DNA of 64,000 nucleotides from Guillardia theta CCMP2712. Lineage: Eukaryota > Protista > Cryptophyta. The notes under the pieces were generated by a model. The model did no database searches and had not been told where the DNA came from. It saw only the letters and a program-made list of their open reading frames with translations. A program made the translations under genes and the position numbers. Shown piece after piece: positions 240-53,155 of the stretch (positions are counted from its first letter, which is position 1; the number at the start of each line of letters is the position of its first letter). The stretch is taken from assembly GCF_000315625.1 (NCBI RefSeq), contig NW_005434566.1:1-64000 (forward strand). The letters run 5' to 3'.

Positions 240-3065
240 GTCTGCACGAGCGTCGCCAGCTCGTCTATCCGTGAAGTCTGTGAAGGAACCGAGGAGAGGA
301 AGGAAGTGAGAAGTAGCAGCAGGCGAAGGAAGAGAAGAAGGAGAGGGGATGAGGGAGGAGGAGGAAAGAAAGGACGGGAGAGAGGAAACGAGAAACACAG
401 GTGCGGGGGAAGGAGGGAGAGGCAGGAGCGGGAGGACGGAGCAGGGGAGAGGAGAGAGGCGAGTCATCGGACCTGCTCGTCGCCATTTTCTGTCACGTAC
501 ATGAGCCGCTCCTCCATCGCTCTCCTCTCGTTGCTCTTCTCCTCCGCTTGTAACTCCGCCATCGTCAGCGCAGACCTGCACACCGTCAGCTCGCGTACAA
601 CCTCCCCCTCCTCCTCCTCTTTCATCTCCTCCTCCTCTTTCATCTCCTCCAACTCCTCCTGCCCTTTCCTCACTCCTTACTCTCTCATCTCTCCTCCTCT
701 CCTTCCCTCCTTTTTATCCTCTACCTCAACTCCTGCAGACGTTCATATGCTTCCTCCTTCAGCATCGCCTCTTCGCGAACTCGTTCGTCCAGCAGCTCTG
801 GAGTCCATCATCAGTCCACACCACAGTCCTCCTCCTCCTCCTCCTCCTCATCCTCCTCCTCATCCTCATCCTCCTCCTCCTCTCCTCCTCTCGCTCCTCC
901 TTTCCCTCCTGCTCCCCTTCCTCTCCTCTCCTCCCTCTCCTCCTCTTTTCGTCCTCACCGCATCGCTCCGACAGCTCTCCGATCCTGACCCGCAGACTTG
1001 TGATTTCCTCCTGCAGACCCGAACAGGCAGAACAGGGCAAGGGACTATGATGGTGATGATGAGGAGGAGGAGGAGCTGCAGCAACAGCAGCAGGAACAGC
1101 GGAGGAACATGAGCAGGAGCAGGAGGAGCAGGAAGAGCATTCTTCATCATCGGCGTCCATGTAACGCAAGAAGGCATCTTCCTCCAGCCTGAATCCTTCT
1201 TGCCATGCTCGCCCTCCGGTGCATGAGAACTCCAGCTCCTCTCCTCCTCCTCCTCCGTCCTCGCCAAATCCATCCTCCTCTCTCTCCCTGCTATGGTGTT
1301 GCTCTCATAGTCTGCAGGTGGAGCCTCGTTGCGATCCTTGAGAGAGGCGAGGAGGGAGGCGAGGGAGGCGTTCGTGCTGCCTCCGCTGCCTGGAGGTGCC
1401 ATGGAGCCATCCAAGTTCACAACCATCCTCTTAGCGCTCTTCTTCCTCCTCAACGTGCTCTTCTTCCCTCCCCGCCCTCCCTCGTCCCCTCCCCTTCGCT
1501 CTGGTGCCTCCGCTCTCCCTGCCCTCCTCCTCGCTCTTCCTCGCCTCGCCCGTGCTGCCGTGACAGCGTCTGGTCAAGGAAGGTGGCCAGACTTGCTGTC
1601 TGGTACTCACTGCCCACACCTCCCCCATGGATCTCGTCCTGGTGAGAAGAACCCAATCTCTTGGACTGAGGAGCTGGAGCTGGAGCTGGAGCTGCAGGAT
1701 CCGGAAGAGCTAAGCTTTCTTCCTCGTGCGCGATGCCTGCATGTCCGTCGGGCATGCAATCACTCTGCAGTTGTCTCGTCAAAGATCGTCCCTCCTCCCA
1801 ACCCCACCCTCCTCCTCCTCCAGCACCTGCACCTCCTCCTCCTCCTCCTCCTCCTCCTGCTCTTCCTCCTCCTCCTCTCACCAGCGCTGGGTTCTCGTCC
1901 CCCTCCTGCGGCTGCTGCGAGGCTCCAGGCCTTTGCACCTCTTCCTCCTCCGCACACTTGCCGAGCACGGAGGGAAGAGAGCGTCGCATGAGAGCGGGGG
2001 GAGCGGCAGGCAGACCCTCCTGGCAGAGGAGACCGGGTCTCGAGGGTGTTGGAGGACGGTCAGAGACATACAATGATCCCCTGCCAAGAGCGCGTCCCCG
2101 CTCATGTCGGGCAGGGAGCCATGCTGGATGGACTTGAACACGGACGCCAGGCTCCATGCTCGGAAGCTGCTCGTGCTCTCGCCGTTGATCTTGAGGATGA
2201 TGCTTCCTGCCGTCAGCCCCGCCTCCTCGCTGGCGCTCCCAGGCAACACGCACACGATCCCCCAGTCGCGCGAGTCGATGGCCATGCCGAGGCTGCTGGG
2301 GAGGAAGCTGTCGCGTCCTTGCGGGCTCACCTTCTCCTCCTCCTGCGCCGCATCTTTCCAGGCGAGGCAGAGGCTGTAGGGCTCGTAGGTGACGCTGAGC
2401 CACCCTCCCACCCCTCGCTCGAGCTCCAGCAGCGTTGGGTTCACCTCGTCAATCTCCCGCAAGGCCTCACGCCATGCTCCCTCCACCCTCTCCTTCCACA
2501 GCAGCCTCCTTCCCTCCACGTTCCATGCCTGCGTTCCTCCGGGAGGATCCACTTCCAGCCAGTTGGCAGGAGGTACAAGCTCCCGGTAGTTGCAGGAGAC
2601 AACTCGGTCCCCTCTCCTCGGGGCGAAGATCATGTCCTGTCCGACACCTCCTCCTCGCACTGCCGCTCGAGGCTGGTTGCGCGTGAGGACGTGAACCTCG
2701 TCGCGACCGAGGTGATGGATGAGCGTGTTGGTGTACGTGTCGTAGGCTCCCCGGTGCTGCTTCCCAAGCTCTCCCTCCTCCTCCACCAGCAAGTAGCCTG
2801 TCCGCACATCGAACTCTGCGGTGAGGCCGAGGAGATCGCGCTTGGCACAGTTGGCGACCATGACGGGCTCGCAAAGCGCTAGAAGCTTCTCATGTCCTAC
2901 TAACTGATCAGAACCAGTCACCCACCACCACCTCCTCCCAGACTTCCTCTTGTTCTTCCAGTACTTCCTTCTCGTTGTACTCCTTCCCTCCTCCTCCTCC
3001 ACCTCCTCCTCCTCCTCCTCCCTTTCGCCACTGCTGCGTCTCCTGCTCCCAATGCTGCTTTTCAT
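240..3065 (-). CDS. Multi-exon hypothetical protein with a PDZ-like domain and C-terminal coiled coil (boundaries approximate)
   Basis: ORF 1878..3065 contains SLGMAIDSRDWGIVCVLPGSASEEAGLTAGSIILKINGES (PDZ-like pattern). Downstream minus-strand ORFs (464-673, 759-1169) are E/R-rich heptad-like segments. Exon structure not resolved. Confidence 0.5.
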
Positions 3066-4638: not shown

Positions 4639-7600
4639 CTAGATGTCTCGGAGGGACTCGGCTCGGAGGATACGATACAGTTTGTGCATCTGAAGGAGAA
4701 ACGGTGAGAAGGAGGAGGAGGAGGAGGAGGAGGAGGAGGAGGAGGAGGAAGAGGATCAGGGAGAGCACGAGGAAGAGCAGGAGGAGAAGGAGGAGAATCA
4801 TTATCATCAGTAGCAGCAGCAGCAGGAGGGAGGAGGAGGAGGAGGAGGAATAGGAGCAGAAGGAAGAGGAGGGCCATGGGCAGGGTTGAGTACCTTGAGC
4901 TTAAGCTGGTGGGATCTTTCATGTCATGCACTTGAATCCCCCCCCCCGATTCGCATCCCGCAGCTCGTGGAAGAAAAGAACACAGATGGTCAGGGCACGG
5001 TAGCCATCCTCCGACTCGCTTGACATGAACTTGTTCTTGACACGGAAAACCTGCGCATAAGCCTTTACTCCTCCGCCTATGGTCATAGCCTTTTTAAATA
5101 ACATCCTCCTCCTCCTAGGCCTTTTGCCTGATGGTTAGGAGAAGATTTCCATTCATTGTTGAACTACCCTTTCTTGGTTTTTAGGNNNNNNNNNNNNNNN
5201 NNNNNNNNNNNNNNNNNNNNNNNNNNNNNNNNNNNNNNNNNNNNNNNNNNNNNNNNNNNNNNNNNNNNNNNNNNNNNNNNNNNNNNNNNNNNNCCTCCTC
5301 CTCCTCCTCCTCCTCCTCCTCCTCCTCCTCCTCCTCCTCCTCCTCCTCCTCCTCCCTCTGCATACCGAGATGCCTGAGGAGGCGTCCAGGCTGTCGAACC
5401 ACTTGAAGACCTCGAGGATTTTCTTGGGCCCGTCGACGATCACCGACAGCCGCACCTGCCCCAGTCGTCATGCTCGCAGCCCCCGCAGCTTCAGGTGGCT
5501 CACGGGGTCGAGGATGTAGCCGCTGTAGGGCCAAACGCACTGCAGCTGAGGGTCTGCATACTTGAGGAGCTTCTGACTGATCCTCGCCTTTGACTTGACG
5601 GGAGCGAAGCAGATCTCAACCCTCCTCACCCCGTCCTCGAACTGACAGTCCACCGAGATCTTGCGCTGCAGCAGGTCGTTGCCGTACTCCTCGAAGTCAG
5701 CGCAGAAGGTGCTGTGGTCGGAGGAGGAGGGGATCAGCTCTTCGCTCGCCCCCTGCGACTCCTTGTCCAGGCTCTCCCTCCCCGAGGGCGACTCGTGGGA
5801 CTGCACGACCTGCAGGACCTTCTTCTGGAAGGCGTGATTCATCAGCTTCGCCCGCAAGTGCAGCTGCGCCACAAACACTTCCTCGTTGTGTACGCGGATG
5901 CCTGTGGGGGAGATCTGAATCATCTTGATCTCGTCCTGGTAGGAGGCGTCGCGCGAGTCCTCCTCGTGCAGGCGGATGGCGAGCACCTGCAGCAGTCAGT
6001 CTCCTCTACCCCCCAAGCTCTTCCTCACCTCAGCATCCGATTGCTTGTAGGGAGAGAACCTCCTGGGCGGCTCCTGCGAGTCCCGGAAGGAGGTCAAGAC
6101 GTGGCCTGCTTCCTCCTTCTTCATCTCGTCGAAGCGATCTTGGCAGTCTCGCCCCAGCAGCGCCATGTGCTTGGCGATGGCAACCTTGAGCTTGGCAAAG
6201 AGATTGAGCTCCTCGTCGTTCCACAGGTTGATCCTCGTCGTCTTGTCCAGGAAGTAGCCGAACCTCGCCTCGAACTCGTCGCTCTCCTCAATCGTCGGGT
6301 CACACGCAGAGCTCCCGGGCGACAGCATCGCTTCGCACGTGCTGATCACGAAGTCGCCCAGGCGGTGGTAGCGCTCTTGCTGCGAGGTGGCGAAGCTGCC
6401 GGCGGCTTGGTTGACGTCATGGAAGCTGGAGTGAACCTCTCCGATGAGAACGCGGTGAGACTCGGCAAAGGGGAGGCTGACAGACGCCTGATTCCTCAAC
6501 CAGTTGCAGAAACCGTTGACGTGCTTCGTCTCGAACTCCTTCATCAGCGCGAACCTGGCGGTGTTGACAAGGAAGCGATAGTCGATGACCTTCATGCGGC
6601 CCTTTGACAACCTGTACCTCCTGGTGTTCGCCTCCCTGCTCGTGAGAAACCCGTCCTTGATCGTGATCTTCAACTCCGACCGGATCTTGTTGATCATCTT
6701 GATCACCTCCCCGTCCTCGTCCTCCGTCCGCACTGGTCTGCACAGGTAGCACCAGAGGAGCATGGCGATTGCGAAGACAACAAGGAGGGAGAGGCAGACA
6801 GACAGCAGAACCTTTAGCAGGAGCTGAGAAGACGACTGGTTCGCTGACTTGCACACGGGCATCACGTCCCTTCCGCTAGGCCCCGGCCACGTCACCGCCA
6901 CGTCCAGCCAGTCAGTCGGCTGGTCCAACATGACCAAGTGGGTGATACTCCCGGCCTCCCACCGTGCGATGGAGACGGTCGCGTTGGCCTGCTGGTTGAC
7001 GAGGTCATACCTGCGCGTCAGGGTCAGCAAGGCGGACAAGGAGAGTCAGTCTCCTACTTGGCGTAGCTCGGGTCGAGGTTCTTGTCAAAGCTGACCTTCC
7101 CTGAAGCGCCTTCGAACGTCAGGGCCCCTATGGTCTCGACAACGGCGGAGACGTTGAAGATGGAGACTCCGTTACGGATCATGGCGTCGAACGCGCGGGC
7201 TATGGCAAAGGTGGCGTCGTAGGAGAGGACGAGGTAGGGGTTGGTCAGCAGCTTGTCGACCCCCGGGTACTCGGAGGGGCTCAGGCTCTCCCACAAGGTT
7301 TGCAACCTGTTGAAGTGAGAGTTGGTGTGGTTGAACCCAATCTTCATCCCCAGATAGCCGTAGGGCAGCCCCGAGCTGATGGACGTGACCGACTCGCTCC
7401 CCATCCACACGATGTTGCCGGTAGCCCCGATGGTGTCGGCAGCCTGAAAGATCTCCAGGGCGTCGTGGTCGTGCATGGCCAGCACGAAGAGCCGCGAGTT
7501 GCTGCAGTTCTCGTAGATGGTCTTGATCAGCGCCTGCGTCCCCGAGGGATTGTTGAACTCCCAGAAGTGAACCTGCTCCACCTCGATGTTCAGCTCCTTG

Positions 7601-9558
7601 CTCCGCTGCAGGAACGTCCGTGCCAGCCCCGTGCAGTAGACGTCAACGCAGCCGATCAGCTGACATTTCGTCCACTTGAAATGTGCCAGGACGTCAGCGA
7701 TGGCTCGACCCTGCAGGTCGTCGGGGGGGCAAGTGCGCGCGAAGTTGGGGTAGAGCTGCTTGTTCGAGAGGTCGGCGCTGGTGGCGCTGAAGCTCACCTC
7801 GACCATCCCCAGACTGTTGAGGGAGGGCAAGACGAGGATGGATTCAGAGCTGAAGCCTGGGCCAACAACCGCCGTCACCCCCTTGGAGTGAAGATCCTCG
7901 GCGATGGCAGCGAGAGCCTCCTGCTTCACAATGTTGAACTGAGCCGCCGACAGGAAACCGTTCTGAGAGATCGCGCGAACAGCCGAAGTGTCGCCGATGA
8001 CCATGCTGACGGTGATCCCTGGCAGCAGAGTAGGATCTTGATTGATCATCATGGTCGCTATCCGTGCTGCCGATGCGGCGTCCTCGTCCTTGTACCCGGG
8101 GTTCCAGTTCTCCACGAACATCCCTCCCAGGACGATCCCTTGGCAGACCCCCAGAGCACCATCTCTTGCAAGATTCAAGTTCTCCAACGAGCTGAATCCT
8201 CCTGCGCTGCTCCATTTCCCAACGATGGAGAAGTTTCGGGCAACAGATTGATAGACCACGTCATACCTGCCCACTTTGGGCCCCAAGTTGGAGGCGAAGG
8301 AGACGTAACCCGAAGCGCCTTCGAACTTGACGTCAAGCAGGGCGTTCTCCAGAGCTGAGGTGTTGTAGATCGACTCGTTTCGCTCGATCATGGCCTGGAA
8401 GGCGTAAGCTAGAGCGAACACGGCATCGTAAGCCAGAGGCAGATAAGAGTAGCTCCGCCACATGCTTTGGTCTGGCATGCTCACGTTACCATAGGCTGCG
8501 CTAGAGAACTGGATGGGCTTGCGAGACCACAACGTCTTGAGGTCGCTGATGCTCTGGCTGCTTTCATTCCAAGCCATTCTCAGCCCGATGTAGTTGCCAG
8601 GCAACTCTGAAGGAAGCAAGCTGCTCACTCCCTCGCTTCCTATCCATACCAGTCTATCCAGCAGGTTCAGTTGCTTCGCCGCAGCAAACACAACCTTAGC
8701 TTGCACGTCCGTCATGAGAAGCACAAAGACGTTAGGAGCTACACAGTCAGCAACTATCGCCTGCAAGTTTGCCGCCACAGACGTCTGATCTACATAGCTC
8801 CACACATTTTGAGTGAAGCGAATTCCCTTCGCTTTGGCGTGCTGCACGAAAACGCTGGTGAGGCCGGCGCAATAGACGTCTGCACAGCTCAGGATCTGGC
8901 AAGACTTGAACTTCAACGATTGCATCAGGTCCGCGATCGCCCAGCCCTGGTACGAGTCAGGAGGACAAATCCTGGCGTAGTCCGGGAATCTTGTTCGATT
9001 GGAGAACACAGGACTTGTAGCGCTTACAAGGACACTGAGAAGATCCTGTTGATACAGCCAGGGGCTCAAGCTGACGGCCTCTGAGCTGTAGCCGGGGCCG
9101 ATCAGAGCAGCAAACTTCTGAGCGTGCGTGTAGTCCAGGGCATCCACCATGGAGCCCTCCAGCAGTTGGTTGAAACTGGAAGGCGAGATGAGGACGTTGG
9201 GGCTCATCGACCGCGTGATGGACATGTCGGCGATGTACAGTTTCAGTCGGCTGCCATGCAGGAAGTTCCTCTCGTTGATGATCTCAACGGCTGCTTGCGC
9301 TGCAGCTGCGATGTACCGCTCCCAGTAGGACGAGGACCATTCGACTACGAACAGTCCCCCTATCGATATCTCACTTGGCACGCTGGCACCTTTGACAAGA
9401 GTCAAGAGGCAGAGGAGGCAACAGAATTTCAAGAAATTGTGGAGTCTCCTCGTTGAGCTGCTGTCACGGTCGGGCGTGCGTTGGCTTCTCCCAGATATTT
9501 CGCGTATACCTGCCGTAACAGCACCGGGGAAACGACCACCGAAATGTTCCGATCTCAT
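4639..9558 (-). CDS. Single-pass receptor: signal peptide, two tandem type-1 periplasmic-binding (ANF-receptor/Venus flytrap) domains, TM helix, cytoplasmic region ending in a RelA/SpoT-like nucleotidyltransferase domain. Exons approx. 9558-7058, 7010-6029, 5986-5504, 5455-5366, 5050-4894, 4689-4639.
   Basis: The VFT motif set occurs twice (IGGLF/LGGMF; IGPGYSS/VGPGFSS; SATSPVFSN..RFP.YAR.CPPD/SATSADLSN..LYPNFART.PPD; YDAVFA/YDATFA; FEGASG.VSF). TM: LLLKVLLSVCLSLLVVFAIAMLLWCYLC. GT-AG introns of 47, 42 and 48 nt join the frames. C-terminal motifs: PVKSKARISQK, DPVRLSV, RVKNKF, DGYRAL, IQVHD, MHKLYRILRA-stop. Exon 5 needs homopolymer frameshift corrections and lies near an N-gap. Confidence 0.85.
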
Positions 9559-11654: not shown

Positions 11655-13948
11655 ATGATCGCTAGTGCTGCTTCTTGGTTCCTGAAGCTTAATGCCCTCC
11701 TCTTCATCCTCTACATCTCCTACACGATCCGTCTGCATGCTGTCCAAGTGTACGGGAAGGTAATTCATGAGTTCGACCCTTGGTTCAACTACCGAGCTAC
11801 CGACTACCTGGTGAACGAGATCAATGCGCGAGGATTCTGGGAGGGATCTCGGTCCTTCTTCAACTGGTATGACGACAAGGTCTGGTATCCCCTTGGCAGG
11901 CCTGTCGGCACGACCATCTACTGCGGCCTGCAGTTCACCTCCGCCTTCATCTACTTCGTGTTGGAGGCTATCGGTCAGCCAATGTCGCTCAATGACGTCT
12001 GCGTCTACGTCCCTTCCTGGTTCGCGTCCTTCTCCTGCCTGTTTGTCTTCGGCATGGCATGGGAAGTCTCGCGCTCCTACAACTCCGCGCTTGCTGCGGC
12101 CTTCTTCATGGCCATCTCCCCTGCTCACTTGATGCGATCGGTGGCAGGAGGGTACGACAACGAGGGGATTGCTGTGGCTGCGATCTGTGGGACCTTCTAC
12201 TTCTGGGTGCGATCGCTGAGGGACAGCTCGTCGTGGTGGTATGGAGTTGTGACGGGCCTCATGTACATCTACATGGTGGCGGCATGGGGAGGTTACATCT
12301 TCGTGCTCAACATGATCGGAGTCCATGCTGCCGTGCTGATCATGAGCGGTCGCTACTCGCAGAACCTGTGGAAGTCCTACTCCATCTTCTACGTCATGGG
12401 CACCCTCGGAGCCATCCAGTTCCCCGTCGTCGGGTACGCTCCCCTCAAGTCGCTGGAGCAGCTGGGCCCTCTCTTCGTGTTCTTCTGGCTGCAGCTCATG
12501 GAGGTCTGCAAGCGCTACGAGCGGGCGCATCCGGACATGGGCGAGCGTCGCATCCGAGACTACTACATGCTCGTCTTCGGAGGAGCGATGGTGGCCGGGC
12601 TTGTGGGGATCATGATCTTCATGCCCCGTGGCTACCTCGGGCCCATCTCTGCTCGCGTGCGGGGACTCTTTGTGCAGCACACGAGGACGGGAAATCCGCT
12701 GGTCGACTCGGTCGCAGAGCACCAGGCGACCAGGGATGAGATGTACTACCAGTACTTCCACATCGTGTGCTACCTGGCCCCCATCGGCTTCGTGTCCATG
12801 TTCTTCAACTTGACCGACCAGAAGCTGTTCGTCATCACCTACACTGCCATCTCCATGTACTTCTCCCGCAAGATGATCCGCCTCATCCTCATCCTCGCTC
12901 CTGCCTCCTCCGTCGTCGCCGGGGTGGCGCTGGAGCTCGTCATCACCTGGAGCATCTCTCAGCACCTGGAGGACCTGGAGGAGCCGGCGGACCCGGTCAC
13001 GGCCAAGTCAGCGGCAGCCAAGAACGTCAAGAAAGCTCAGGGGAAGAAGGGGAAGAAGGGGGGAGAGCTCACGAGCCATCCCTTCTTCCAGGAGCTGAAC
13101 GAGATCTACAGCGAGAACCTGATGCTCCGCAAGGTGCTGGCGGGGGTCTGGCTCTTCATGACCCTCTCCGGCCTCCTCTACTACTGGGTCCACTGCCACC
13201 GCATGGCCGAGAACCTCTCGAGCCCCTCCATCATGCTCATGGCGAGGTCCAAGACCGGAGAGCCCGTCATCATCGACGACTTCCGCGAGTCCTACTGGTG
13301 GCTGCGAGACAACACGCCCCAAGACTCCCGCGTCCTCTCCTGGTGGGACTACGGCTACCAGATCAACGGCATCGCCAACCGCACCACCATCGCCGACGGC
13401 AATACGTGGAACCATGAGCACATCGCGCTGCTCGGCCGCGCCCTCGTGTCCCCGGTCAAGAAGGCCCACAGGATCGTCCGGCACCTGGCCGACTACGTGC
13501 TGGTGTGGAGCACGAGGTACGGCAATATGTGGGGCGACGACATCGCCAAGTCTCCTCACATGGCGAGGATAGGAGGGTCAGTGTACAAGGACATCAAGCC
13601 TGAGGACTTCTGGCAGGATCAGAGCGGGAAGCCTTCGGACATGATGCGCAAGAGTCTCATCTACCGCACCGTCAACTTCAGGCTCGACCCCTCCATCCCT
13701 CAGTTTCCTCCCGACACCTTCGAAGAAGTCTTCACCTCCAAGAACAACATGGTCCGCATCTACAAGGTCCTCCGCGTCTCCGCCAAGTCCAAGGCCTACT
13801 GCTCGGAGGGCCGCGGCTACAAGGCCTGGTACTCCGGGAAGCCGCTGCTCGAGGCGTATCCCCCCGGCCTCAAGAAGATCCTCTCGCAGAAGCAAGACTT
13901 CAAGCAGCTGGAGGACTTCAACCGCCGTGATGAGGTGGAGGAAGACTG

Positions 13949-13949
<1 letters not shown>
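11655..13949 (+). CDS. STT3: Dolichyl-diphosphooligosaccharide--protein glycosyltransferase catalytic subunit STT3
   Basis: 764-aa uninterrupted ORF with HEFDPWFNYR, RSVAGGYDNE, SVAEH, WWDYG, DGNTWN and DIAK motifs; multi-TM N-terminal half. A short upstream exon is possible. Confidence 0.97.
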
Positions 13950-23530: not shown

Positions 23531-24638
23531 TGCAGCCCAGCCCGGCCAAGATTAGCCACCTGAACTTCAGCCCACAGCCTCCTCCTTCCTTATGCAACTC
23601 TGCTCTTCGGGGGAGCCTCAGGTTTTCCAGTCCTCCCCCTCCTCTCCTCTCCTCCTCGCTCCTCTCCTCCCCTCCTCCTCCCTTCCCCTCCCCCTCTGTT
23701 CGCATCCCGTCGCGCCTCATGCTGAGCTCCTGCAACCCATTCGAACTAAAATAATTATAAATATTTCATCCCCCTCATATCTCCGTACCCTCATCCCCTA
23801 CTAGTCCCAACTCCTCGGTGAGTTGGCAGCTGCGGAGCCGGGCGCCGGGTGCCGGAGGGCCCGGCCCTCATCCCTCACATCTATGACCCCTACCACCCCC
23901 TCACATTCCATTCCAGGCCCAGCAGGGGTGGTACCTGACCCCTTAGTTAAGCCCTCTTCCCATTGATAAATGATCACCCCTTATTTTTACCTGATGTACC
24001 CCCATATTTCTATTGGGGGTGGTCGGTCCCCATTGCTACCACCCCTCCTTGGATAGGCTGATGGTGGCGGCCTCCCCTTCCCTACCCCCTATGCAATACT
24101 TGGTACCCCCACCCCTATCATTTATTTTGACACCCCCCTTTTCTATTCATTTCATTTATGCAATGACGGGTAATAAGAAATACCCCACCTCATATTCCGA
24201 CGCCGCACTGACCACCCACCCCCCCTTAGCCTCAACCCCTTGGCATCCCCGCACTCGCTCCAGTCATGCTCTCGTCTGCGCTGAGGTAAGCAAGAGGAGG
24301 AGAGGAGAGGAGAGGAGGAACGGGAAGAGCTCGAGCAGAGGGAGAAGATGCAAAGAGACAGACGTGCATCAGGCTGTACTCAACACGAGAAGAAGATGGC
24401 TGGAGGATGTGAGAGAGGATCAGGTGTTGATGACGGCAGGAGCAAGCGTGGAAAGGATGAAAAGGTTAGTTTGTTTAGAGGTAGTTGTTATCTGTTGTGT
24501 TAGAGTGTTAGTTAGGCATACGTTAGATTGTACACTGGAATATAGCAAGAAGCACACTAGGGGTGAAACAAGGCGAAGAGAACAGGAGGACATCTGACTG
24601 CACATGCTCCTCCTCGTCGCAGGCCGATGCAACCAGCC

Positions 24639-27872
<3,234 letters not shown>

Positions 27873-29878: not shown

Positions 29879-31406
29879 TCACGTGACGGTCTCGATCTGG
29901 TCGCTCGGCGGAGGAGAGGAGAGGTTGAACTTGTTGCGAATGAACATGGCGATCCTCTTCAGCTTCTGTCTTCCTTCTTCCGTCTCGTTCAACGTCGCGA
30001 AGTGCTCAGAGAAAAGCTGCAGACGCTCTCAACCTCTCGCCTCCTCCTCCTCCCCGACTACTCACCATGTCCTTCTTGTGCGTCAGCAGCAGCTCGTCAG
30101 CGCTCAGCTCCTCCCCCAGGAAGCTCTTGAGCTGCATGTACGTCATCCTGCCATGCGCAGAGCCGCACGCGTGTCAGCACGAAGCACAAGGAGTCGAGGG
30201 AAGAGAGATGGAAGAAGCAAGAGGGACGAGAGGGGGGAAGTGCTGCCCGGAGACGAGCAGGATGGCTGGTAGGTAGGAGAGGAGGCAGAGAGTCAGGAGC
30301 GAGGGAGCACACTCTCACCAAGCGCTTCTGTCCGCGTGGATCCTGTCCCAGTCGCCGGCGTCGAGGATCTCCATGGTGTGGGACGTGGACCTCAGACGCT
30401 CCTGCTCCAGGTGCTTCACTGACGTCACTCGCACCAGGCTCGACTCCTCCAGCCGCCCGTCGGTGGAGCGCCGGCAGATGCGATGGTAGCGGACAATGCG
30501 GGGAAAGGAGAGGCGGAGGAGGTCGTCGACGATCATGCACAGGAACTCGAGGTCGGAGGAGGGAAGCTCGAACTCGCAGCGGGCCGCGCGTGAGAGGATC
30601 TCCTCCGGATTGCGGTGGAGGAGGCGGCCGAGCCCATGCCCGACCTGCAGGCCCTTGCGGATGAGGTAGTCATCCTCCCAGAAGACCGTCCACGACCCTG
30701 CCGCCTGCCGCCCCTCCACCAGCATCGCGCTCGCTTGCCCTGTACAGTCCGCACCAGAATGTAGGAGGTGATTGATGCTGGAGGGGGAAGGAGAGGGGGA
30801 GGGAGAGGGGGAGGAGGAAGGGGTGGGGGTTGTGGAGGCTAATTTTGCCTGTGCCTGCAGGCTGACGAGGAAGGCCATGACGTCGTTCATGGTCTGAAAG
30901 AGCTCCTTCCCCATGCTGTTGAACATGTACAGGATCGAAGTCCCCGAGTACCCGGCTTGAGACATCCTCATCGCCAGCAGCTGCAGGTGGCCCAGCGAAG
31001 GGTCAGCAACGTGCGATGCTCGGTCTGTCGACAGCCGCACGGAGAGCTGAAGGGGCCAGGGAGTCTCGGGCTCAGCTCGAGGAGACAGCCGAGCTGGGAG
31101 CGGGACTTGAGGCGATGACAGCTCATCGTTGCTGTGACCGGCAGCGTCTTGACAAGCTTCAGCTCGGGCTCGTCGCAAGCAGGTGCCGCATGGTCTCAGC
31201 TTGTCGCACTTGAGCTTCGACTGCCTGCAGGGCTCGCAGGTGGAGATGCCGAAGACAGCGTCGCAGCCGTCTTCGAGCCCGAGTCTCGAGCAGTGATGGC
31301 ATGGCCTTCTCTTGTCGCACCTGACCTTGTGCCTGCGACACCTCGAGCAAGACTTGCCTTGGCTGCCCTGCTGCTCCTTGCGATACCAATTCAAGGGCAC
31401 CGACAT
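29879..31406 (-). CDS. Transcription factor with two tandem Zn(II)2Cys6 binuclear clusters
   Basis: CSRCRRHKVRCDKRRPCHHCSRLGLEDGC and CEPCRQSKLKCDKLRPCGTCLRRARAEAC; short downstream exons end ...QIETVT-TGA at 29879. Confidence 0.85.
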
Positions 31407-45627: not shown

Positions 45628-46463
45628 CTCTTGCCATCTCGACGGACGGTACCCTGCATCCTGACACCCTCCGCTTCATCTGGTATCTGGCGGACATCAT
45701 TGCTCAGCGCTCGATGCCTCTTGAGGATGCGGCGTTTGGTCGGCACTTCGTGCCTGATGACGGACCTGCTGCTGAGGTCCTGGCTCGCAAACGCGCCGCC
45801 ACCTATCATCCTTATCAGCGCCTCACTATGCAGCTGACGCTGGAGGCGCTCTTGTCTGGTGCGAGGCGCATGACGCCCTTGCGGGCGCAAGCACTTCTCG
45901 AGCCAGAGGACAGCTCCTCCTCGGACTTTGTCGAGTCGCCCGAGGAGGAGTCTTCGCCGGAGGTCTCCGACTCCGATGGGGGAAACAGGCGTCTCCGTCC
46001 CTCACTGTGACATCGATACAGTGGGGGATCCTCGACGGCAGGTACCGTCCTCCCATCCTCATGACCGCAAGATGAAGGGCGATATCCACATCCCTGGAAT
46101 CCGCGATCGAGGGTCCGAGCAGTACGAGGGCTTGATGGCGGACGTGACGTTGGTCCACCCTTACATTGGCAGCTCTGCCGACCTGACCAAGTGGGGGGAG
46201 GTCAACCTCGACGCCCTCCATGTTGCAGCGTCTGAGAAGATTCGCAAACATCGCTCTGCATATGCCATGACTACTCCTCCTCGAGCGTTCATCCCTCTTG
46301 CCATCTCGACGGACGGTACCCTGTCTCACTATGCAGCTGACGCTGGAGGCGCTCTTGTCTGGTGCGAGGCGCATGACGCCCTTGCGGAATGAATGATGGG
46401 GCTCTCTCCCACTCCGTTTTGGCATCATTCTCATAAGGCCGCTGGCCTTTTTTTAAATCTCGT

Positions 46464-47148
46464 GTATGGCCTTATTTTCTCCTGTGTATTTCTCGCAGCA
46501 CCTCGCAAATTCTCTTACCATTCTCATGTGAAATATTTTTCCGCACCATAATGGTGAGGGATATTTTTGAGAGATCGTGAGAACTCGCATGAGAAAAATG
46601 ATGTAATGTTTCAGTGTGTATTTCTGACACTCTCTTAAAATTGTGTTACCATTCTCGTGTGAAATATTTTTCCGCACCAAAATGGTAAAAGAATTTTTAA
46701 GAAGTTCAGAAAAACTTCGCACGAAAAAAAATAGAGATATTGTGAGACAAATGGCGCAGGGGGCATGATACCACTAATATAAGGATATAAGTATGGCTAA
46801 TATAAGTATGGCCTTTTCTAATATAAGTATGGCCTTATTTTCTCCTGTGTATTTCTCGCAGCACCTCGCAAATTCTCTTACCATTCTCATGTGAAATATT
46901 TTTCCGCACCATAATGGTGAGGGATATTTTTGAGAGATTGTGAGAACTCGCATGAGAAAAATGATGTAATGTTTCAGTGTGTATTTCTGACACTCTCTTA
47001 AAATTGTGTTACCATTCTCGTGTGAAATATTTTTCCGCACCAAAATGGTAAAAGAATTTTTAAGAAGTTCAGAAAAACTTCGCACGAAAAAAAATAGAGA
47101 TATTGTGAGACAAATGGCGCAGGGGGCATGATACCACTAATATAAGGA
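46464..47148. repeat. 322-bp direct repeat x2 (46464-46785, 46827-47148) with internal sub-repeats; putative viral terminal/origin region
   Basis: Near-identical copies with a 363-bp period; each contains TTACCATTCTC(A/G)TGTGAAATATTTTTCCGCACCA twice; the spacer is built of TAATATAAGTATGGC repeats. Confidence 0.9.
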
Positions 47149-47228
47149 CAGTCACATGAGATCAAAAATATATAATGTAATTCGATGTGCTGAGGCGGGC
47201 TTACAAATAAAATATGCGTTATTAATAA

Positions 47229-48038
47229 ATGAAAAACCATTTTTTATTCTCATATGCTGGTAACAAACGTGAAGAGGTAGAGCATATATATTCAAAGATT
47301 AATTTTGAAAATATTGACACAATATGCGAGCCTTTTTGTGGTTCTTGTGCTGTGTCCTATTACATATGGAAGCAATTCCCAACAAAAAGATTTAGGTATG
47401 TTCTAAATGATTTAGACAAGAATTTATATGCGCTTCTTAGCTTGATGAAATCAGGAGATGAAAAGAGGATGGAAGAGATAGAGAAAGAGATAAATGATAT
47501 GGTCAGAGATGCGGATGATGAAATAATTATAACAAAAGAAGAATACAATAAATTCATAAGAAATAAGACACTCGCAGGCTTCATAATGGCTAATAAATAT
47601 TTTAACATGCGTGCTGGTATGTTTCCAGTCAGGGATTATAAGTCCCGTTTCAATAAAAAGTTTAAATTTTCAGATTATCCAATATATGACTTCTTAACAA
47701 CAGAAGACATAACTATCTTAAATAAGGATGGGTGTGAAGTTATACAAGAATATGATAAGGATAATGTCTTTATGTTTCTAGACCCTCCATATATAGCATC
47801 AAATAATAACTTTTATTCAGAGCAAAAGCTTAATATGTATCAATATTTAGTGAAAATAGGTTTTAAGAATTTCAAGAGCAAGATGCTAATATGTCACGAG
47901 AACAATTGGCTTTTCAAGATAATATTCAAAGACTACATAAATGATGAAGAAGAGTACAAAAAGCAATATCAAAACTCTTTACGTAGTGAAGGCAACAAGA
48001 AGAAGACAACAACTCACATATGTATTATGAATTACTAA
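47229..48038 (+). CDS. Dam-like (D12 class, alpha-type) N6-adenine DNA methyltransferase 1
   Basis: FSYAGNK, EPFCGS (SAM-binding), LND, FLDPPY (catalytic); 269 aa. Confidence 0.92.
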   Translation: MKNHFLFSYAGNKREEVEHIYSKINFENIDTICEPFCGSCAVSYYIWKQFPTKRFRYVLNDLDKNLYALLSLMKSGDEKRMEEIEKEINDMVRDADDEIIITKEEYNKFIRNKTLAGFIMANKYFNMRAGMFPVRDYKSRFNKKFKFSDYPIYDFLTTEDITILNKDGCEVIQEYDKDNVFMFLDPPYIASNNNFYSEQKLNMYQYLVKIGFKNFKSKMLICHENNWLFKIIFKDYINDEEEYKKQYQNSLRSEGNKKKTTTHICIMNY

Positions 48039-48059
48039 TAAAATATGCGTTATTAGTAA

Positions 48060-48857
48060 ATGAAAAACCATTTCTTCTTTCCTTACGTTGGTAATAAGAG
48101 AGAAGAGGTTGAGCATATATATTCAAAGATAAATTTTGAAAATATTGACACGATATGCGAGCCTTTCTGTGGGTCTTGTGCTATGTCTTATTACATATGG
48201 AGGCAATTCCCAACAAAAAGATTTAAGTATGTGTTGAATGATACTGACAAGAATTTATATGAGCTTCTAACCCTTGTTAGATCTGGAGATGCTGAGAAGA
48301 TGAAAAAGATTGAGAAAGAGATAAATGATATTATCAGAAACGAGGATGATGAGATTGTGATAACAATTGAACAATATAAAGATTTTATAAAGACCAGTGG
48401 ATTATCCGGTTATATAATGGCTAATACATATTTCAACTTAAAAGCAGCCCTTTTTCCTATCAAAGATCGTTATAAGTCTCGTTTTAGTAAGAAGTTCAAA
48501 TTTTCAAACTGTCCAATGTATGACTTTCTTACATCTGAGGATATAACCATCTTTAACAAGGATGGTTCTGACATCATTGAAGAATATGATAAGGATAATG
48601 TGTTTATGTTTTTAGATCCTCCATATTTAGCTTCTTGTAATAGTTTTTATTCAGAGCAAAAGCTCAATATGTATGAGTACATAATAATGAGAGGCTTAAA
48701 AAATTTTAATAGCAAGATGCTAATGTGTCACGAGAATAATTGGATTTTCAAACTATTATTTAGAGACTACATTAATAGTGATGAGGATGAGTACAAAAAG
48801 CTTTATCTGTTTGGAAGAAAGAAGGCAACAACTCACATATGTATTATGAATTACTAA
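48060..48857 (+). CDS. Dam-like N6-adenine DNA methyltransferase 2 (tandem paralogue)
   Basis: FPYVGNK, EPFCGS, LND, FLDPPY; collinear with MTase 1; 265 aa. Confidence 0.92.
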   Translation: MKNHFFFPYVGNKREEVEHIYSKINFENIDTICEPFCGSCAMSYYIWRQFPTKRFKYVLNDTDKNLYELLTLVRSGDAEKMKKIEKEINDIIRNEDDEIVITIEQYKDFIKTSGLSGYIMANTYFNLKAALFPIKDRYKSRFSKKFKFSNCPMYDFLTSEDITIFNKDGSDIIEEYDKDNVFMFLDPPYLASCNSFYSEQKLNMYEYIIMRGLKNFNSKMLMCHENNWIFKLLFRDYINSDEDEYKKLYLFGRKKATTHICIMNY

Positions 48858-48876
48858 TTTTATAAAGTATTAATAA

Positions 48877-49122
48877 ATGGTTTATCAGCTTTTAGAAGAA
48901 GGGAAAATTTATTATTGCGAGGCCTTAGAAAGACCTTGGACTAGATTTAATGTGCTAGACACAATCGGTGTCAAGCTTACCCCTCCAAAAAAAATGTCAT
49001 GGTATAGTAAATTCAAACAATGGCTTCAAACAGCTGGTCAAAGGCCCTTAGAGAGTGGAACGATAAGAACCACGGGAAGAATATGTACTGTATCCCCAAG
49101 AAGAACACAAGACCATACGTAG
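48877..49122 (+). CDS. Small viral hypothetical protein
   Basis: ATG preceded by TATTAATAAATG, as for MTase 1; its 3' part overlaps the next ORF, so the true end is uncertain. Confidence 0.4.
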   Translation: MVYQLLEEGKIYYCEALERPWTRFNVLDTIGVKLTPPKKMSWYSKFKQWLQTAGQRPLESGTIRTTGRICTVSPRRTQDHT

Positions 49123-49214
49123 AGGTGGTCAAGATCCAAAAAAGGATAGAACAAGGAGAAGGCCCCGCACATCGCACTCGCAGTCATAAAGGGGTTTATG
49201 CTACAAGCATCTAA
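49020..49214 (+). CDS. Small basic viral hypothetical protein (64 aa)
   Basis: AAATG start context; compact basic sequence NSWSKALREWN...YCIPKKNT..Y.EV. Confidence 0.55.
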   Translation: MASNSWSKALREWNDKNHGKNMYCIPKKNTRPYVEVVKIQKRIEQGEGPAHRTRSHKGVYATSI

Positions 49215-49230
49215 AAAGCTTTTATCCCCG

Positions 49231-50025
49231 CTAAAGATCTAATCCATACTCATTCTTAATCTTCACCCATTCACTTCTATATTTATTTGCTTTTTCTTCG
49301 TTCTTCTGCTCCCATTCAGAAAATAACTTCCTACCATCTTTTGCCTCTACAACATTCAACACATCGACATCGTCAAAATTTACCTTGTCTTTATCAAAGA
49401 ATATCACACTGTACCATGTGCCTTCGTTATCTTTGTCTATACGATACACCACACCAATATAAAAACGATGCGAGTACTTTCTTTTGATGAAGGTATCCAC
49501 TGTGATATCTTTTGAATTACGCGGTGGGTTCCTTTTTGGTGCTATGTACTCAATAGGTTTGTTTGACTTATCCATGCCCTTCATGACCTCATAAATCTTA
49601 TCTAGATCCTCATGTTTAAACCACTCATTACCATATTGAGCTGTTGTGACCTCTTTCATCTTTCTTTTAACCTCAAGCTCATATTTTTCTTGCGGTGATC
49701 TAGTTTGATTTGTGTTTTTAACATATTTATACCACACTCTAAGATGTAACACATGAAAATCACCATCATAATAGCGTTCATAATCTGATAATCTTCTTAT
49801 AATCTCAGAAGAACCAATAGAAGAAATACCAAGCTTTATCAAATCACCCTTTCCATTGATTGTTTTGGGTGTTCTTATTATATAAAAAGCCGATGTGTCA
49901 AGATACTTCGCATATGTGTCCTTAAATTCTGACCATTTAATGCCATCCTTGGCATTGAAAACAATTTCACCGGCCTTGCTGCCTCTTGGCTTTTCAACTT
50001 CTGAGACTGTTGATGTGCTGATCAT
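49231..50025 (-). CDS. T5orf172/MUG113-like (GIY-YIG superfamily) domain fused to a C-terminal Tudor-like domain
   Basis: FYII...LIKLGIS...RRLSDY...E...GNEWF pattern; C-terminal FYIGVVYRID....TWYSVIFFDKD. Confidence 0.65.
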   Translation of the reverse strand: MISTSTVSEVEKPRGSKAGEIVFNAKDGIKWSEFKDTYAKYLDTSAFYIIRTPKTINGKGDLIKLGISSIGSSEIIRRLSDYERYYDGDFHVLHLRVWYKYVKNTNQTRSPQEKYELEVKRKMKEVTTAQYGNEWFKHEDLDKIYEVMKGMDKSNKPIEYIAPKRNPPRNSKDITVDTFIKRKYSHRFYIGVVYRIDKDNEGTWYSVIFFDKDKVNFDDVDVLNVVEAKDGRKLFSEWEQKNEEKANKYRSEWVKIKNEYGLDL

Positions 50026-50059
50026 TTAATTTATTTTTATATATTAAAATATAGTCACA

Positions 50060-52407
50060 ATGAGTGGAAACAATATATAAATCAAGTAGATGATTATATA
50101 GGTTCTTTGGGTTCTTCTACTCTGCAGCTGACTATTGAAGACATGCAGGAGCAAATTAACAACATTGAAACAACTCTAGGAACAACCACAGATGGTGGCA
50201 CAGTAAATGACAGCAGCCTCATCGGTAGAATTGAAGGGATCGAGACAACAGTCCAAGACAACACACAGAAACACGAGGCCAACACAACAAGCATCAACAA
50301 TATCAATCAGGTCCTCTCAGCATTTGAGAATTTCGCGGATGGCAACTATGAACAGGCAGCACTAGATCTGACAAACTTCTTTACAACGGTAGATAACAAT
50401 TCACAGCAGATCGCACAGCACGTCACAGATATAGCAGGACTAAAAGCCAGCGATAACCAATTCACTCTGACAATACAAGGCCTAGCAGATCAAGTAACAG
50501 GCCATCAAACAGACATATCGGGAATTCTTGATACAAACGCTAGCCAAGACCAACGCTTTACAGATGTAGCAGCGGACCTCCTAGATCTACAAGGCCAGAT
50601 AGACTTTATCAATAACAGCACAGCAGTGCTCTTTGTAGGGCAAGTTCTTTATGAGATTTTAAAATGGAAATTTGGAGCAGCTATCAATGATTTCACTAAG
50701 AGAGTATGGGATCGCATAAATGGCAAATACAAAGGAGAAGGTGAATATGATCCAGTGGCCGAGGGCGATACTTATAATACATTCACAGGTGATAGCATCC
50801 AAGCCATCCTAGATGAGCTCAATGATATGGCCTCTGTGTATAGATACAATAGCTTAAACAACGCTGCGGGCATCAATGCTGACCCTATCTCAACGTATGG
50901 CACAACAATCTATAAATCTTTATTGCTTTATGGCTTGTCTGATGCCAATATTTACCTTACAGGAGATGTCCATTTTGGTTCATTCAGCACCGCCACAGAC
51001 ATATTTACAACAACCAAGAGCCTAAGCAATTATATGGTTTTGAAGGGAGTTAAATCTAATCATTGCTTGAAAATAAATGATGCTGAACAGCTTCTAGCGC
51101 CTGAAATAGGCAATGAGCTATTATTCTTAGATTTTAACACTGATGATTTTGAGGAGGAGGCAACAACGCATAAATTAAAACTCAAACTATCTCTTGGAAG
51201 TATCATAAAAAAGAATGCTACTGGCGACGCAATTGGAATAGGGACAGACCCAATAGCAACATATATATGCGTGATAGATGGCAAGACAAAAATTCAGGGT
51301 ATCTTAGAGATTAAAGATGGGACAACAACAAATTATAAGAATGTTAATGAATACCTATTCTCGAAGGGAGTGGATACAAACGATGTTCTACACATAGATA
51401 GCACTAATGAGCACATACCGCTCAGATATAATACGGATCATTTTGAGAAGGACGCAACGACATTTCAGCTTGAAAGCAAGTTTGAGAATGCCGGCGTAAT
51501 CAAATATGACACAAGCCAAGTTTTGAAGACTGTTGGCATCCATACAGATCCTATTAGCACTTACCCAACAGCACACAAGGGCGATATATTGTTTCTTGGT
51601 GGAAACATAAAAACAAATGGCAGCATCCAGATAGGCACCTTCAATGGCGGGACAAATACATTCTCAATCATAAAAACAGTAAATGATTATTTAGCTATCA
51701 AGGGGGTCAAGGCCGATCATTGTCTTTCAATAGATGAAACAACAGAAAAATTAGAACTCCTATTCAATACCAATGACTTCTATATTGATAACACGGGAGC
51801 GGCTCCAACTTACAAGCTGAATAGTCAATTAAGCAAGGTGATTGAGTTCAACACCACATCAAGAACGGTTGGCATAGGCACGACAACACAAACAGGGGTC
51901 ACCTGTGTCATAGATGGCAAGACAAAGATACAGGGTGTGTTAGAGATAAAAGATGGGGCAACCACTAATTATAAGGATGTCAATTCATATTTATTTGCTC
52001 AGGGTGTGAAGGATGCGCATTGTTTAAAGATAGATGAAACAACAGAGAAGCTAGAACTCTTGTTCAACGCAGAAGACTTCTATATTGACACCACATCAAC
52101 ACCTCCAACAAATAAGCTTAATCTCAAACTGAATGAGATCTTACAGTTTAACTCGGCAACAAATTTGCTTGGCATTGGCACGGCACCTGTCTCTGGTATG
52201 AAGCTAACAATAAATGGCTCAACTAGGGTTCAAGGCTCATTGTTTATAAGAGAAGGGGCAACAACAAATTACAAAGATGTCAATAATTATTTATTTGCTC
52301 AGGGCTTGGATGCCAACGATGTCCTTTATGTAGATAGCACGGATGATCATTTGAAACTACGATACGATACAGCACATTTTACAAAGGATACAACAACATA
52401 CAAATTA
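50060..52407 (+). pseudogene. Viral fibre/tail-fibre-like protein: N-terminal coiled coil plus ~90-aa repeats; 5' frameshift and 3' truncation
   Basis: Repeats of (I/V/L)GIGT..P......IDGKTKIQG.LEIKDG.TTNYK.VN.YLF..G; ATG at 50060 is 1 nt out of frame with the long ORF; the sequence switches to retroelement DNA at ~52408. Confidence 0.7.
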
Positions 52408-53155
52408 GGCGCAAGCACTTCTCGAGCCAGAGGACAGCTCCTCCTCGGACTTTGTCGAGTCGCCCGAGGAGTCTTCGCCGGAGGTCTCCGACTCCGATGG
52501 GGGACACCCTTCGAGTGGCGCCGACGATCGGCGCGGAGCTGGCGAGGCGTCTCCGTCCCTCACTGTGACGTCGGGTGCCTCCGGAGAGCTCGACACCACT
52601 GGGGTGCTTGCTGCTGGTCCGAGCTCGCCTGCTTCCTCCCCGGCATCGGTCGGGTCACGCCGGTCCTTGGGCATTGCCGCGGCGTCGCCGCCGTCACGGG
52701 CGGCTTCCGCTGACTCGGCTACCGCTGACTCGGAGGCTAGCGAGGAGGACTACCTCGAGCGGTACCGTGTTCCTGTGTCCAGCCTCCCTCCGTCCGCTGC
52801 CCCAGGCGGACCCCCCGGCGGGCAGCACCGGCTCCTTGTCGGCGGCTGCCCTTTCTCCGTCCGCGGCCGCCCGCTTTGTGGCGGCAGCGGACGTCTCGAC
52901 TGACAGTGGTCAGTCGGCTGCCTCCGGGTATCGCGTCTAAGGGATGTTATTCCTCCTGCATGCTCCTGCTGCTTGTTGCTTGATTGCTTGACCCTTAGGC
53001 TGCTTGTCTGCGCGGCTTCGCGCTTGGGCTGGCGATCTTGTGTTTTGTGTGTGATTGTGCAGCTTCTCGCTGTGCGCTGTGTGCCAGGAGGTTTAGCATG
53101 TTCCTGCTTTATTTTGCTTGAGGCCCTTTTTACCTTTCAGTGCCAGTAAATCCAT
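52408..53155 (+). mobile_element. 3' half of the retrotransposon copy interrupted by the viral fragment
   Basis: Starts GGCGCAAGCACTTCTCGAG, continuing ...GACGCCCTTGCGG at 46387; ends CCAGTAAATCCATT. Confidence 0.88.

Follow-up and report, generated by a model that had tools for sequence, protein, structure and literature searches.

Can a single gene of a cryptophyte alga couple an extracellular ligand-binding receptor to an enzyme of the RelA/SpoT homologue (RSH) type? RSH enzymes are a hallmark of bacterial and plastid stress signalling, and the question is raised by a locus in a 64,000-nucleotide stretch of the Guillardia theta CCMP2712 genome (contig NW_005434566.1, positions 1 to 64,000; hereafter the window). 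The original prediction, made from these letters alone, had placed at 4639-9558 one gene encoding a signal peptide, two Venus flytrap (VFT) modules, a transmembrane (TM) helix, a linker of about 300 residues, and a C-terminal domain (C-domain) with the five motifs of RSH synthetases. The analysis described here, in which the fold of the C-domain was taken from a predicted model, supports the reading of a receptor-coupled RSH-like enzyme for fold, active site and architecture.

The receptor gene and its transcript

A database search with the first open reading frame (ORF) of the locus retrieved P0001, a protein of 1377 aa whose sequence agrees with the exon-1 ORF of the window at 100% identity. 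P0001 comes from a single JGI cDNA contig, L001 (4647 nt), in which the ORF runs without interruption. When L001 was mapped to the window by BLASTN, it formed six colinear blocks, the exon borders of which were fixed by an exact-match test. The result is a minus-strand gene of six exons, running from 9558 to 4639, with one ORF of 1419 aa (full-length numbering is P0001 numbering plus 42). The span that had been predicted thus corresponds exactly to start and stop in the cDNA, and the signal segment, the two VFTs, the TM helix and the C-domain lie on one spliced mRNA, as they also do in full-length orthologues from Guillardia and Hanusia. The VFT/TM part and the C-terminal exons, for which separate transcripts had been considered, share that mRNA. 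All of introns 1-5 are GT-AG (47, 42, 48, 315 and 204 nt, respectively), and exons 1-4 and 6, which comprise 4107 coding nt, are letter-perfect relative to the cDNA. In the ORF listing of the minus strand, the same gene appears as ORFs of 834 aa (9558-7054), 347 aa (7039-5996) and 172 aa (5986-5468), followed by short pieces. The features of the gene are listed below in the direction of transcription.

Up to 9841, minus strand: 5' untranslated region, with in-frame stops upstream of the ATG
9558-7058, minus strand: coding exon 1, with the ATG at 9558, exact in the cDNA from L001 position 284; 45-aa N-terminal extension, hydrophobic signal/anchor segment, VFT1 and most of VFT2
9351-8266, minus strand: VFT1, aa ~70-431
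8118-7057, minus strand: VFT2, aa 481-834, mostly in exon 1 with its end in exon 2
7010-6029, minus strand: coding exon 2, exact in the cDNA; end of VFT2 and stalk, TM helix, N-module and the first four codons of the C-domain
About 6811-6740, minus strand: TM helix, in exon 2
About 6751-6041, minus strand: helical juxtamembrane N-module, aa 921-1157, in exon 2
Exon 2 (four codons) through exon 6, minus strand: C-domain, aa 1158-1419
5986-5504, minus strand: coding exon 3, exact in the cDNA; N-terminal helices of the C-domain with a variable, acidic/Ser-rich insert, together with motif 1 (APVKSKARISQKLLKY) and the beginning of motif 2 (YILDP)
5455-5366, minus strand: coding exon 4, 30 codons, exact in the cDNA; remainder of motif 2 (VRLSVIV), a beta-strand and the next helix
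5365-5051, minus strand: intron 4, GT-AG, with a (GGA)n repeat and an assembly gap at 5186-5293
5050-4894, minus strand: coding exon 5, frame-broken in the window; in the cDNA, motif 3 (CRVKNKF..DGYRDL) and motif 4 (GEIQVHD)
4689-4639, minus strand: coding exon 6, exact in the cDNA; motif 5 (MHKLYRILRAESLRDI) and the stop codon TAG at 4641-4639
To at least 4535, minus strand: 3' untranslated region, from the cDNA

Exon 3 was also recovered from the six-frame translation of the window by hmmsearch with a family profile built from 47 C-domains (A3; E 2.4e-44), and the K, R, K and Y of its motif 1 region are invariant or nearly so in the family columns. The same search revealed no further paralogue in the window.

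Exon 5 is the one part of the coding sequence that the window does not render faithfully. It measures 157 nt there versus 153 nt in the cDNA, and the two copies are 91% identical, with 9 mismatches, 4 indels and a G10 run in the window. Three-frame translation of the window copy gives no single open frame, and the codon for the catalytic Glu reads GGG where the cDNA has GAG. The motifs that had been assigned to this exon are indeed present in the cDNA, whose translation is ...VCRVKNKF..DGYRDL..GEIQVHDKKIHQLKLKMHKLYRILRAESLRDI, but the window exon is corrupted, and RVKNKF..DGYRAL (frame 0) and IQVHD (frame 2) had been read from two frames. Defects of this kind, adjoining an assembly gap, could mean that a pseudogene or a chimeric assembly lies in the window and that the architecture is not real at this locus. 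Yet the other five exons are identical to an expressed and fully open cDNA, some of the defects are homopolymer changes (the G10 run, and T-for-C changes that lengthen T runs) such as poor base calls give, and the Guillardia and Hanusia orthologues share the full-length architecture; a pseudogene or chimera is thus very improbable. Since the damage is limited to 157 nt by the gap, with perfect coding sequence on either side, the defects of exon 5 probably reflect poor assembly rather than a defective allele.

The gap itself (5186-5293) falls within intron 4, and the cDNA is continuous across the junction of exons 4 and 5; the reading frame is therefore unaffected. Introns 4 and 5 are filled with long triplet repeats, (GGA)n/(CCT)n (window 4695-4860 and 5294-5360), and the repeat abutting the gap probably caused it. 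Other features near gaps of this scaffold may be equally unreliable.

In the predicted receptor part of the protein, the Pfam family ANF_receptor (PF01094) matched in two stretches (E 9e-87; 291.8 bits versus a cut-off of 25.4), and Peripla_BP_6 matched as well. VFT1 and VFT2 are 36% identical to one another (E 5e-77), a resemblance that identifies them as tandem duplicates. One strong TM helix follows the signal segment, with a Kyte-Doolittle value of 3.01 over 19 residues; a weaker stretch (1.7) lies within VFT1. No match to 7tm_3 was found in Pfam, and only one TM-grade segment follows the signal sequence, so that there is no seven-TM bundle. We infer a membrane location in which the VFTs face outward and the C-domain lies in the cytosol. 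The ORF begins 45 residues ahead of the hydrophobic signal segment (MRSEHFGG...RRLHNF-LKFCCLLCLL; window 9432-9558), unlike the Guillardia orthologue, which has an ordinary short signal peptide. This extension could act as a signal anchor or in targeting, or it could stem from an unusual start.

Pfam gave no match to Pkinase or Guanylate_cyc in the 498-aa cytoplasmic region. Over its roughly 500 residues no other family matched either, whether single-exon ORFs or spliced regions were searched, the only returns being noise (Chordopox_E11, Nrap_D2). The membrane-proximal half had been described as a linker of about 300 residues; it is instead a conserved helical domain of about 235 aa that is predicted to fold with confidence. 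An AlphaFold2 model of this N-module (237 aa; profile A5, 34 sequences) is all-helical with a predicted local distance difference test score (pLDDT) of 82. Its fold has no relatives in the PDB (best E 0.76), and a PDB sequence search likewise returned none. A degenerate HD hydrolase, which would recreate the pairing of HD and synthetase domains in the long RSH enzymes, was considered for the N-module and rejected on the grounds that there is no Pfam HD match, that the module is all-helical and that no PDB fold or sequence matches it. Every homologue whose sequence extends upstream of the N-module (32 of 32) carries a hydrophobic segment of TM grade there, and the end of that segment lies about 20 residues before the module. 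Because the TM segment directly precedes it in this way, the N-module is taken to be a juxtamembrane transducer module.

Fold and active site of the C-terminal domain

The AlphaFold2 model of the C-domain, built from the alignment of 47 sequences, has a pLDDT of 85.5 and a predicted template-modelling score of 0.81. When the model was compared with the PDB by Foldseek, the best 50 matches were all RSH synthetases, 29 of them with E<=1e-3. The highest-ranking entries (5ded, 6fgj, 6ex0 and 6fgk; E 4e-6 to 1e-4) belong to the small alarmone synthetases (SAS) of Firmicutes, SAS1/RelQ and SAS2/RelP (YjbM and YwaC), with 5ded (SAS1/RelQ) scoring best at E 4.4e-6. Also included are RelSeq, the Rel proteins of S. 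aureus and B. subtilis, ribosome-bound RelA, Tas1, FaRel2 and the exported synthetase 8vx3. None of the 50 is a nucleotidyltransferase from outside the RSH group, such as cGAS/OAS, CCA-adding enzymes, KNTase or MNT. As judged from its model, then, the C-domain is a very divergent member of the RSH synthetase fold, which is the outcome that the original prediction had anticipated from a structure search.

At the level of sequence, the relation to RSH synthetases is marginal. A shallow profile of five sequences returned nothing relevant from the PDB sequences, and it was only with the 47-sequence profile that RelP was reached. The members of that profile are 31-45% identical to the query, except for two close orthologues at 92% and 71%. 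Its best match was 6fgk_A, the GTP pyrophosphokinase YwaC (RelP/SAS2), with E 0.0045 and 19.7 bits, and the alignment is colinear over all of the motifs. ApiKtkeRmreKl of the profile lies on sRVKSFESIVNKL of YwaC, IlDpvR on IHDIAGVR, RvKNkF..dGYrDl on KVKDYI..NGYRSL, and EiQihd on EIQIRT.

Conservation within the family was counted column by column over the 47 sequences. Seven residues are invariant in all 47 sequences (P0001 numbering): the motif 1 Lys and Arg (K1250 and R1254), the Asp and Arg of DPVR (D1279 and R1282), the Asn of KNKF (N1316), and the Glu and Gln of EIQ (E1347 and Q1349). Near-invariant are K1258, Y1262, W1271, R1313, K1315, G1326, Y1327, R1328, D1329, D1352 and K1359; the second Lys of motif 1 and the Gly of GYRD are each kept in 46 of the 47 sequences, and the Tyr of GYRD in 42. 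D1279 and E1347/Q1349 align with the Asp and the EIQ of YwaC, where RSH enzymes have the Asp that binds metal and the catalytic Glu-x-Gln, roles that we take to be those of D264 and E323 in RelSeq. K1250 and K1258 stand where the triphosphate-binding helix has its two Lys, so that both Lys of the RxKxxxSxxxK motif are present, but its first Arg is not, and its Ser is exchanged for an invariant Arg. We read these patterns of sequence conservation to mean that catalysis has very probably been retained, with ATP as the likely donor; they point to no particular acceptor.

The receptor family and its relation to known systems

Five orthologues and paralogues were combined in a profile (A1), which among 1.84 billion representative proteins matched 910 at E<=1e-3 and 368 at E<=1e-10; many of the 910 are short, probably exon-sized ORF calls, and this figure therefore overstates the number of genes. 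When mapped onto the receptor, the matches reveal two separable modules, the N-module (aa 921-1157) and the C-domain (aa 1158-1419). The exon-1 ORF is 60% identical to a Guillardia theta protein and 59% identical to a protein of Hanusia phi, and these orthologues, together with a paralogue at 30% identity, keep both the architecture and the motifs.

In paralogues, the cassette of TM helix, N-module and C-domain sits behind different ectodomains, of which three kinds were observed besides ANF_receptor. The ectodomains joined to the cassette are as follows.

ANF_receptor: GUITHDRAFT_122367, _110646 and _121912
CHASE: GUITHDRAFT_162182
Phosphonate-bd (periplasmic-binding-protein (PBP) type 2): P0012
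Ephrin_rec_like: P0158 and P0220

This exchange of ectodomains in front of a constant TM helix, N-module and C-domain is the signature of a signalling output module. UniRef names the proteins of the family after their ectodomains or as uncharacterised, and the RSH-like domain is unannotated. In one metatranscriptome protein (P0187; L002:3-1748), WD40 beta-propeller repeats are joined to the RSH-like C-domain (E 2.4e-17), which thus also occurs in a soluble, non-receptor context.

About ten proteins from different 50% clusters (P0093, P0107, P0119, P0125, P0128, P0140, P0144 and P0149-P0151) contain the N-module only. They end a few to a few dozen residues past the sequence RQD(H/D)xxV, which in the present gene is the site of intron 2 (window 5987-6028); the position of this intron therefore seems to be conserved across paralogues. 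A separate 'N-module only' architecture was rejected, as most of these proteins stop just after the conserved RQD(H/D)xxV. The short forms thus probably arose where an ORF call continued into the conserved intron; less probably, regulated retention of that intron would yield tail-less receptors.

All matches with a named taxon come from cryptophytes, namely Guillardia theta, Hanusia phi, Cryptomonas curvata and Cryptomonas paramecium. The remainder are environmental, and cluster look-ups gave metagenome or metatranscriptome sources only. A scan of 185,579 bacterial and archaeal genomes for the pattern II[GA]E[IV]Q[IVL][HQ]D produced 13 pattern matches, none of which proved by tblastn to be a relative; the scan thus disclosed no bacterial or archaeal relatives and no bacterial donor.

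Among known enzymes, the closest in structure are SAS1 and SAS2. They have the same order of the five motifs and a similar core that spans motifs 1 to 5 in about 115 aa, and they hold in common with the C-domain the Mg-binding Asp, the Glu-x-Gln, the two Lys of the triphosphate helix and the Gly-Tyr of the acceptor loop. However, SAS are soluble bacterial proteins of about 200 aa, whereas the domain described here is extended at its N-terminus by about 110 residues, with a long helix and an acidic insert, and forms the C-terminus of a 1419-aa eukaryotic membrane receptor. In overall plan, the receptor more closely resembles the receptor guanylyl cyclases NPR-A and NPR-B, in which a single TM helix leads from the same ectodomain family to a regulatory module of ~250 aa and then to a nucleotide-converting domain at the C-terminus. 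Yet NPR-A/B have one VFT per chain and not two in tandem, a kinase-homology module in place of the orphan helical fold, and a class III cyclase in place of an RSH-like output. Class C G-protein-coupled receptors and ionotropic glutamate receptors likewise share the ANF_receptor/VFT ectodomain, but in place of their seven-TM bundle or pore there is here a single TM helix and an enzyme-like tail.

The plant and algal long RSH proteins (RSH1-4/CRSH and the diatom RSHs) are similarly eukaryotic and contain a synthetase domain of the RSH fold. In those proteins, though, HD and synthetase domains are combined with TGS/ACT or EF-hand domains, are detectable by Pfam, and belong to soluble, plastid-targeted enzymes (PMC5633626, PMC6881373, PMC3153485), whereas the receptor lacks an HD domain, has a synthetase-like domain that Pfam does not detect, and is membrane-anchored with that domain predicted to be cytosolic. 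The toxic and exported RSH proteins, which include the type VI secretion system (p)ppApp synthetase Tas1/Apk1, FaRel2/CapRel and SaEAS, have the same fold and were matched by the model (6ox6, 8pu4 and 8vx3, the last of these, the exported synthetase, aligning over about 233 columns). Unlike the C-domain, which lies behind interchangeable extracellular sensors, they are bacterial toxins or secreted proteins without sensor domains.

A full-text search of the literature found no fusion of a receptor to an RSH domain. The RSH survey of Atkinson et al. assigns eukaryotic members to the plastid long RSHs, the hydrolase Mesh1 and a small number of soluble SAS that are unplaced and probably came from bacteria, and the word 'transmembrane' is absent from it (PMC3153485); diatom and plant RSHs are described as plastid enzymes (PMC6881373, PMC5633626). 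According to a 2025 paper, the RSH enzymes characterised previously were all bacterial and cytoplasmic, and exported ones were added there (PMC12691689). What appears to be new against this literature is a divergent RSH-fold domain in a receptor-coupled eukaryotic architecture.

Proposed function of the receptor and other features of the window

The reading that we favour, with a probability of about 0.55, is that the gene encodes a type-I plasma-membrane receptor enzyme of the cryptophyte, a receptor-regulated pyrophosphokinase that would deliver a (p)ppNpp-type product to the cytosol. The interchangeable sensors in front of a constant enzyme-like tail point to a signalling output rather than to a toxin. 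The mechanism proposed is drawn by analogy with receptor guanylyl cyclases and SAS enzymes, the latter of which are oligomeric and allosterically regulated. A small ligand would close or re-orient the extracellular flytraps, and the change would be relayed through the TM helix and the helical N-module, much as receptor guanylyl cyclases use their kinase-homology domain. In consequence the RSH-like domain would change in activity or in oligomeric state and would move the beta,gamma-pyrophosphate from ATP onto an acceptor nucleotide, at its 3'-OH, so that a (p)ppNpp-type messenger would arise in the cytosol. What we infer in this scheme is that a ligand exerts control, that the domain is catalytically active and that the acceptor is a nucleotide. 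The RSH fold can use acceptors besides GDP and GTP (PMC12691689).

Several observations weigh against this reading. The window copy has a broken exon 5, and no cognate hydrolase or effector has been identified. PF04607 (RelA_SpoT), the Pfam family by which the original prediction was to be checked, did not match at all, even at E<=10, any of the 47 C-domains or the cytoplasmic regions of P0001, P0003 and P0005. A comparison by hhalign with a two-sequence profile of E. coli RelA and SpoT was colinear but weak (probability 2.6%, E 0.017), and the template-modelling scores from Foldseek are moderate (about 0.5 per target), with only about 130 of the 262 residues superposing. In addition, the correspondence of the five motifs stands in its order, which is colinear with YwaC as proposed, but not in all of its residues. 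Relative to SAS, motif 1 reads PxKxxxRxxxK for RxKxxxSxxxK, the first Arg being replaced by Pro or Ala, and DPVR stands for DxxGxR, with no Gly and with the Arg two residues earlier. The acceptor segment reads RVKNKF..DGYRD for KDYI..PKxNGYxSxH, so that only the Gly-Tyr of PKxNGYxSxH is kept and its PK, Asn and His are not conserved. Finally, EIQxHD takes the place of EIQIRT, with HD for RT.

These departures could instead indicate that the C-domain is a pseudoenzyme, a regulatory domain that binds ATP or an alarmone-like ligand, or that provides a surface for oligomerisation or scaffolding, and signals through partners. The missing canonical residues, the blindness of Pfam to the domain and the lack of a known hydrolase partner would all fit with this. 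However, where RSH domains have degenerated, as in the SpoT-like or plant RSH1 synthetase halves, the catalytic residues are typically lost, whereas here the Mg-binding Asp, the Glu-x-Gln and three basic phosphate ligands are invariant in 47 sequences at 31-45% identity, which is the pattern of a working site; a pseudoenzyme is accordingly doubtful. If the enzyme is active, its acceptor might be a macromolecule, namely the 3' CCA end of tRNA as for the toxic SAS FaRel2/CapRel, in which case the receptor would throttle translation directly and would not act through a diffusible messenger. The FaRel2 structures 8pu4 and 8pu1 are among the Foldseek matches (E about 3e-3), the PKxNGYxSxH of (p)ppGpp synthetases has largely been replaced, and basic residues peculiar to the family (the R and K of RVKNKF and the R of GYRD) could bind RNA. 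Yet in the Foldseek scores FaRel2 falls about 1000-fold behind SAS1 and SAS2, 42 of 47 sequences retain the stacking Tyr of GY, a membrane tether would be awkward for modifying the bulk tRNA pool, and exchangeable sensor ectodomains are typical of second-messenger enzymes, all of which makes a tRNA acceptor unlikely.

A different chemistry on the Pol-beta-like core, such as nucleotidylylation of a protein or small molecule or the synthesis of linear or cyclic oligonucleotides, seems more improbable still. The RSH fold does belong to the wider nucleotidyltransferase superfamily, and the acceptor site has been remodelled; however, the 50 best structural matches contain no nucleotidyltransferase other than RSH enzymes. 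Classical Pol-beta nucleotidyltransferases carry the motif set hG[GS]...DxD, whereas the conserved set of the C-domain, a single Asp with ExQ, is specific to RSH enzymes.

Should the favoured reading of a receptor-regulated pyrophosphokinase hold, alarmone-like (p)ppNpp would serve as cytosolic second messengers behind cell-surface receptors in a eukaryote, in parallel to cAMP and cGMP. More tentatively, cryptophytes might possess a whole set of 'receptor alarmone synthetases', in which VFT, CHASE, PBP type 2 and ephrin-receptor-like sensors drive one cytosolic RSH-fold pyrophosphokinase. RSH relatives with an intact active site can evidently escape Pfam, and a synthetase invisible to Pfam bears on the source of ppGpp in organisms, animals included, that have Mesh1 but no recognisable synthetase (PMC7666150). 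The receptor would moreover offer a natural scaffold, switchable on and off, for RSH enzymology, and for algal biology a candidate system for sensing nutrients or chemicals.

The neighbouring genes are ordinary eukaryotic ones, and among those in the window there is no sign of an operon-like partner, for example a hydrolase, beside the receptor gene.

11655-13949, plus strand: STT3 oligosaccharyltransferase subunit (E 3.7e-60)
1878-3065, minus strand: PDZ-domain protein
30315-31406, minus strand: Zn2Cys6 binuclear-cluster protein

Two stretches of low GC content were also observed. In the smaller, at window 24000-26000 (GC 0.40), ORFs of 213-262 aa overlap on both strands (25013-25801); the longest, 25013-25801 on the minus strand, was the only ORF of that stretch scanned and gave no match in Pfam, NCBIfam or PHROG. 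The larger, at window 46400-52400, is a sharply bordered island of GC 0.29-0.45 within surroundings of 0.55-0.70, packed with intron-less ORFs. Two of them, in tandem on the plus strand (47229-48038 and 48060-48857), encode Dam-like D12-class N6-adenine DNA methyltransferases (Pfam E 1.6e-15 and 2.3e-14; phrog_56). A 264-aa ORF (49231-50025, minus strand) has no family match, and an 868-aa ORF (50107-52713, plus strand) has faint S1-domain matches only. The island resembles an insertion of viral or prokaryotic origin in the algal scaffold, or else foreign sequence that was joined to it in error.

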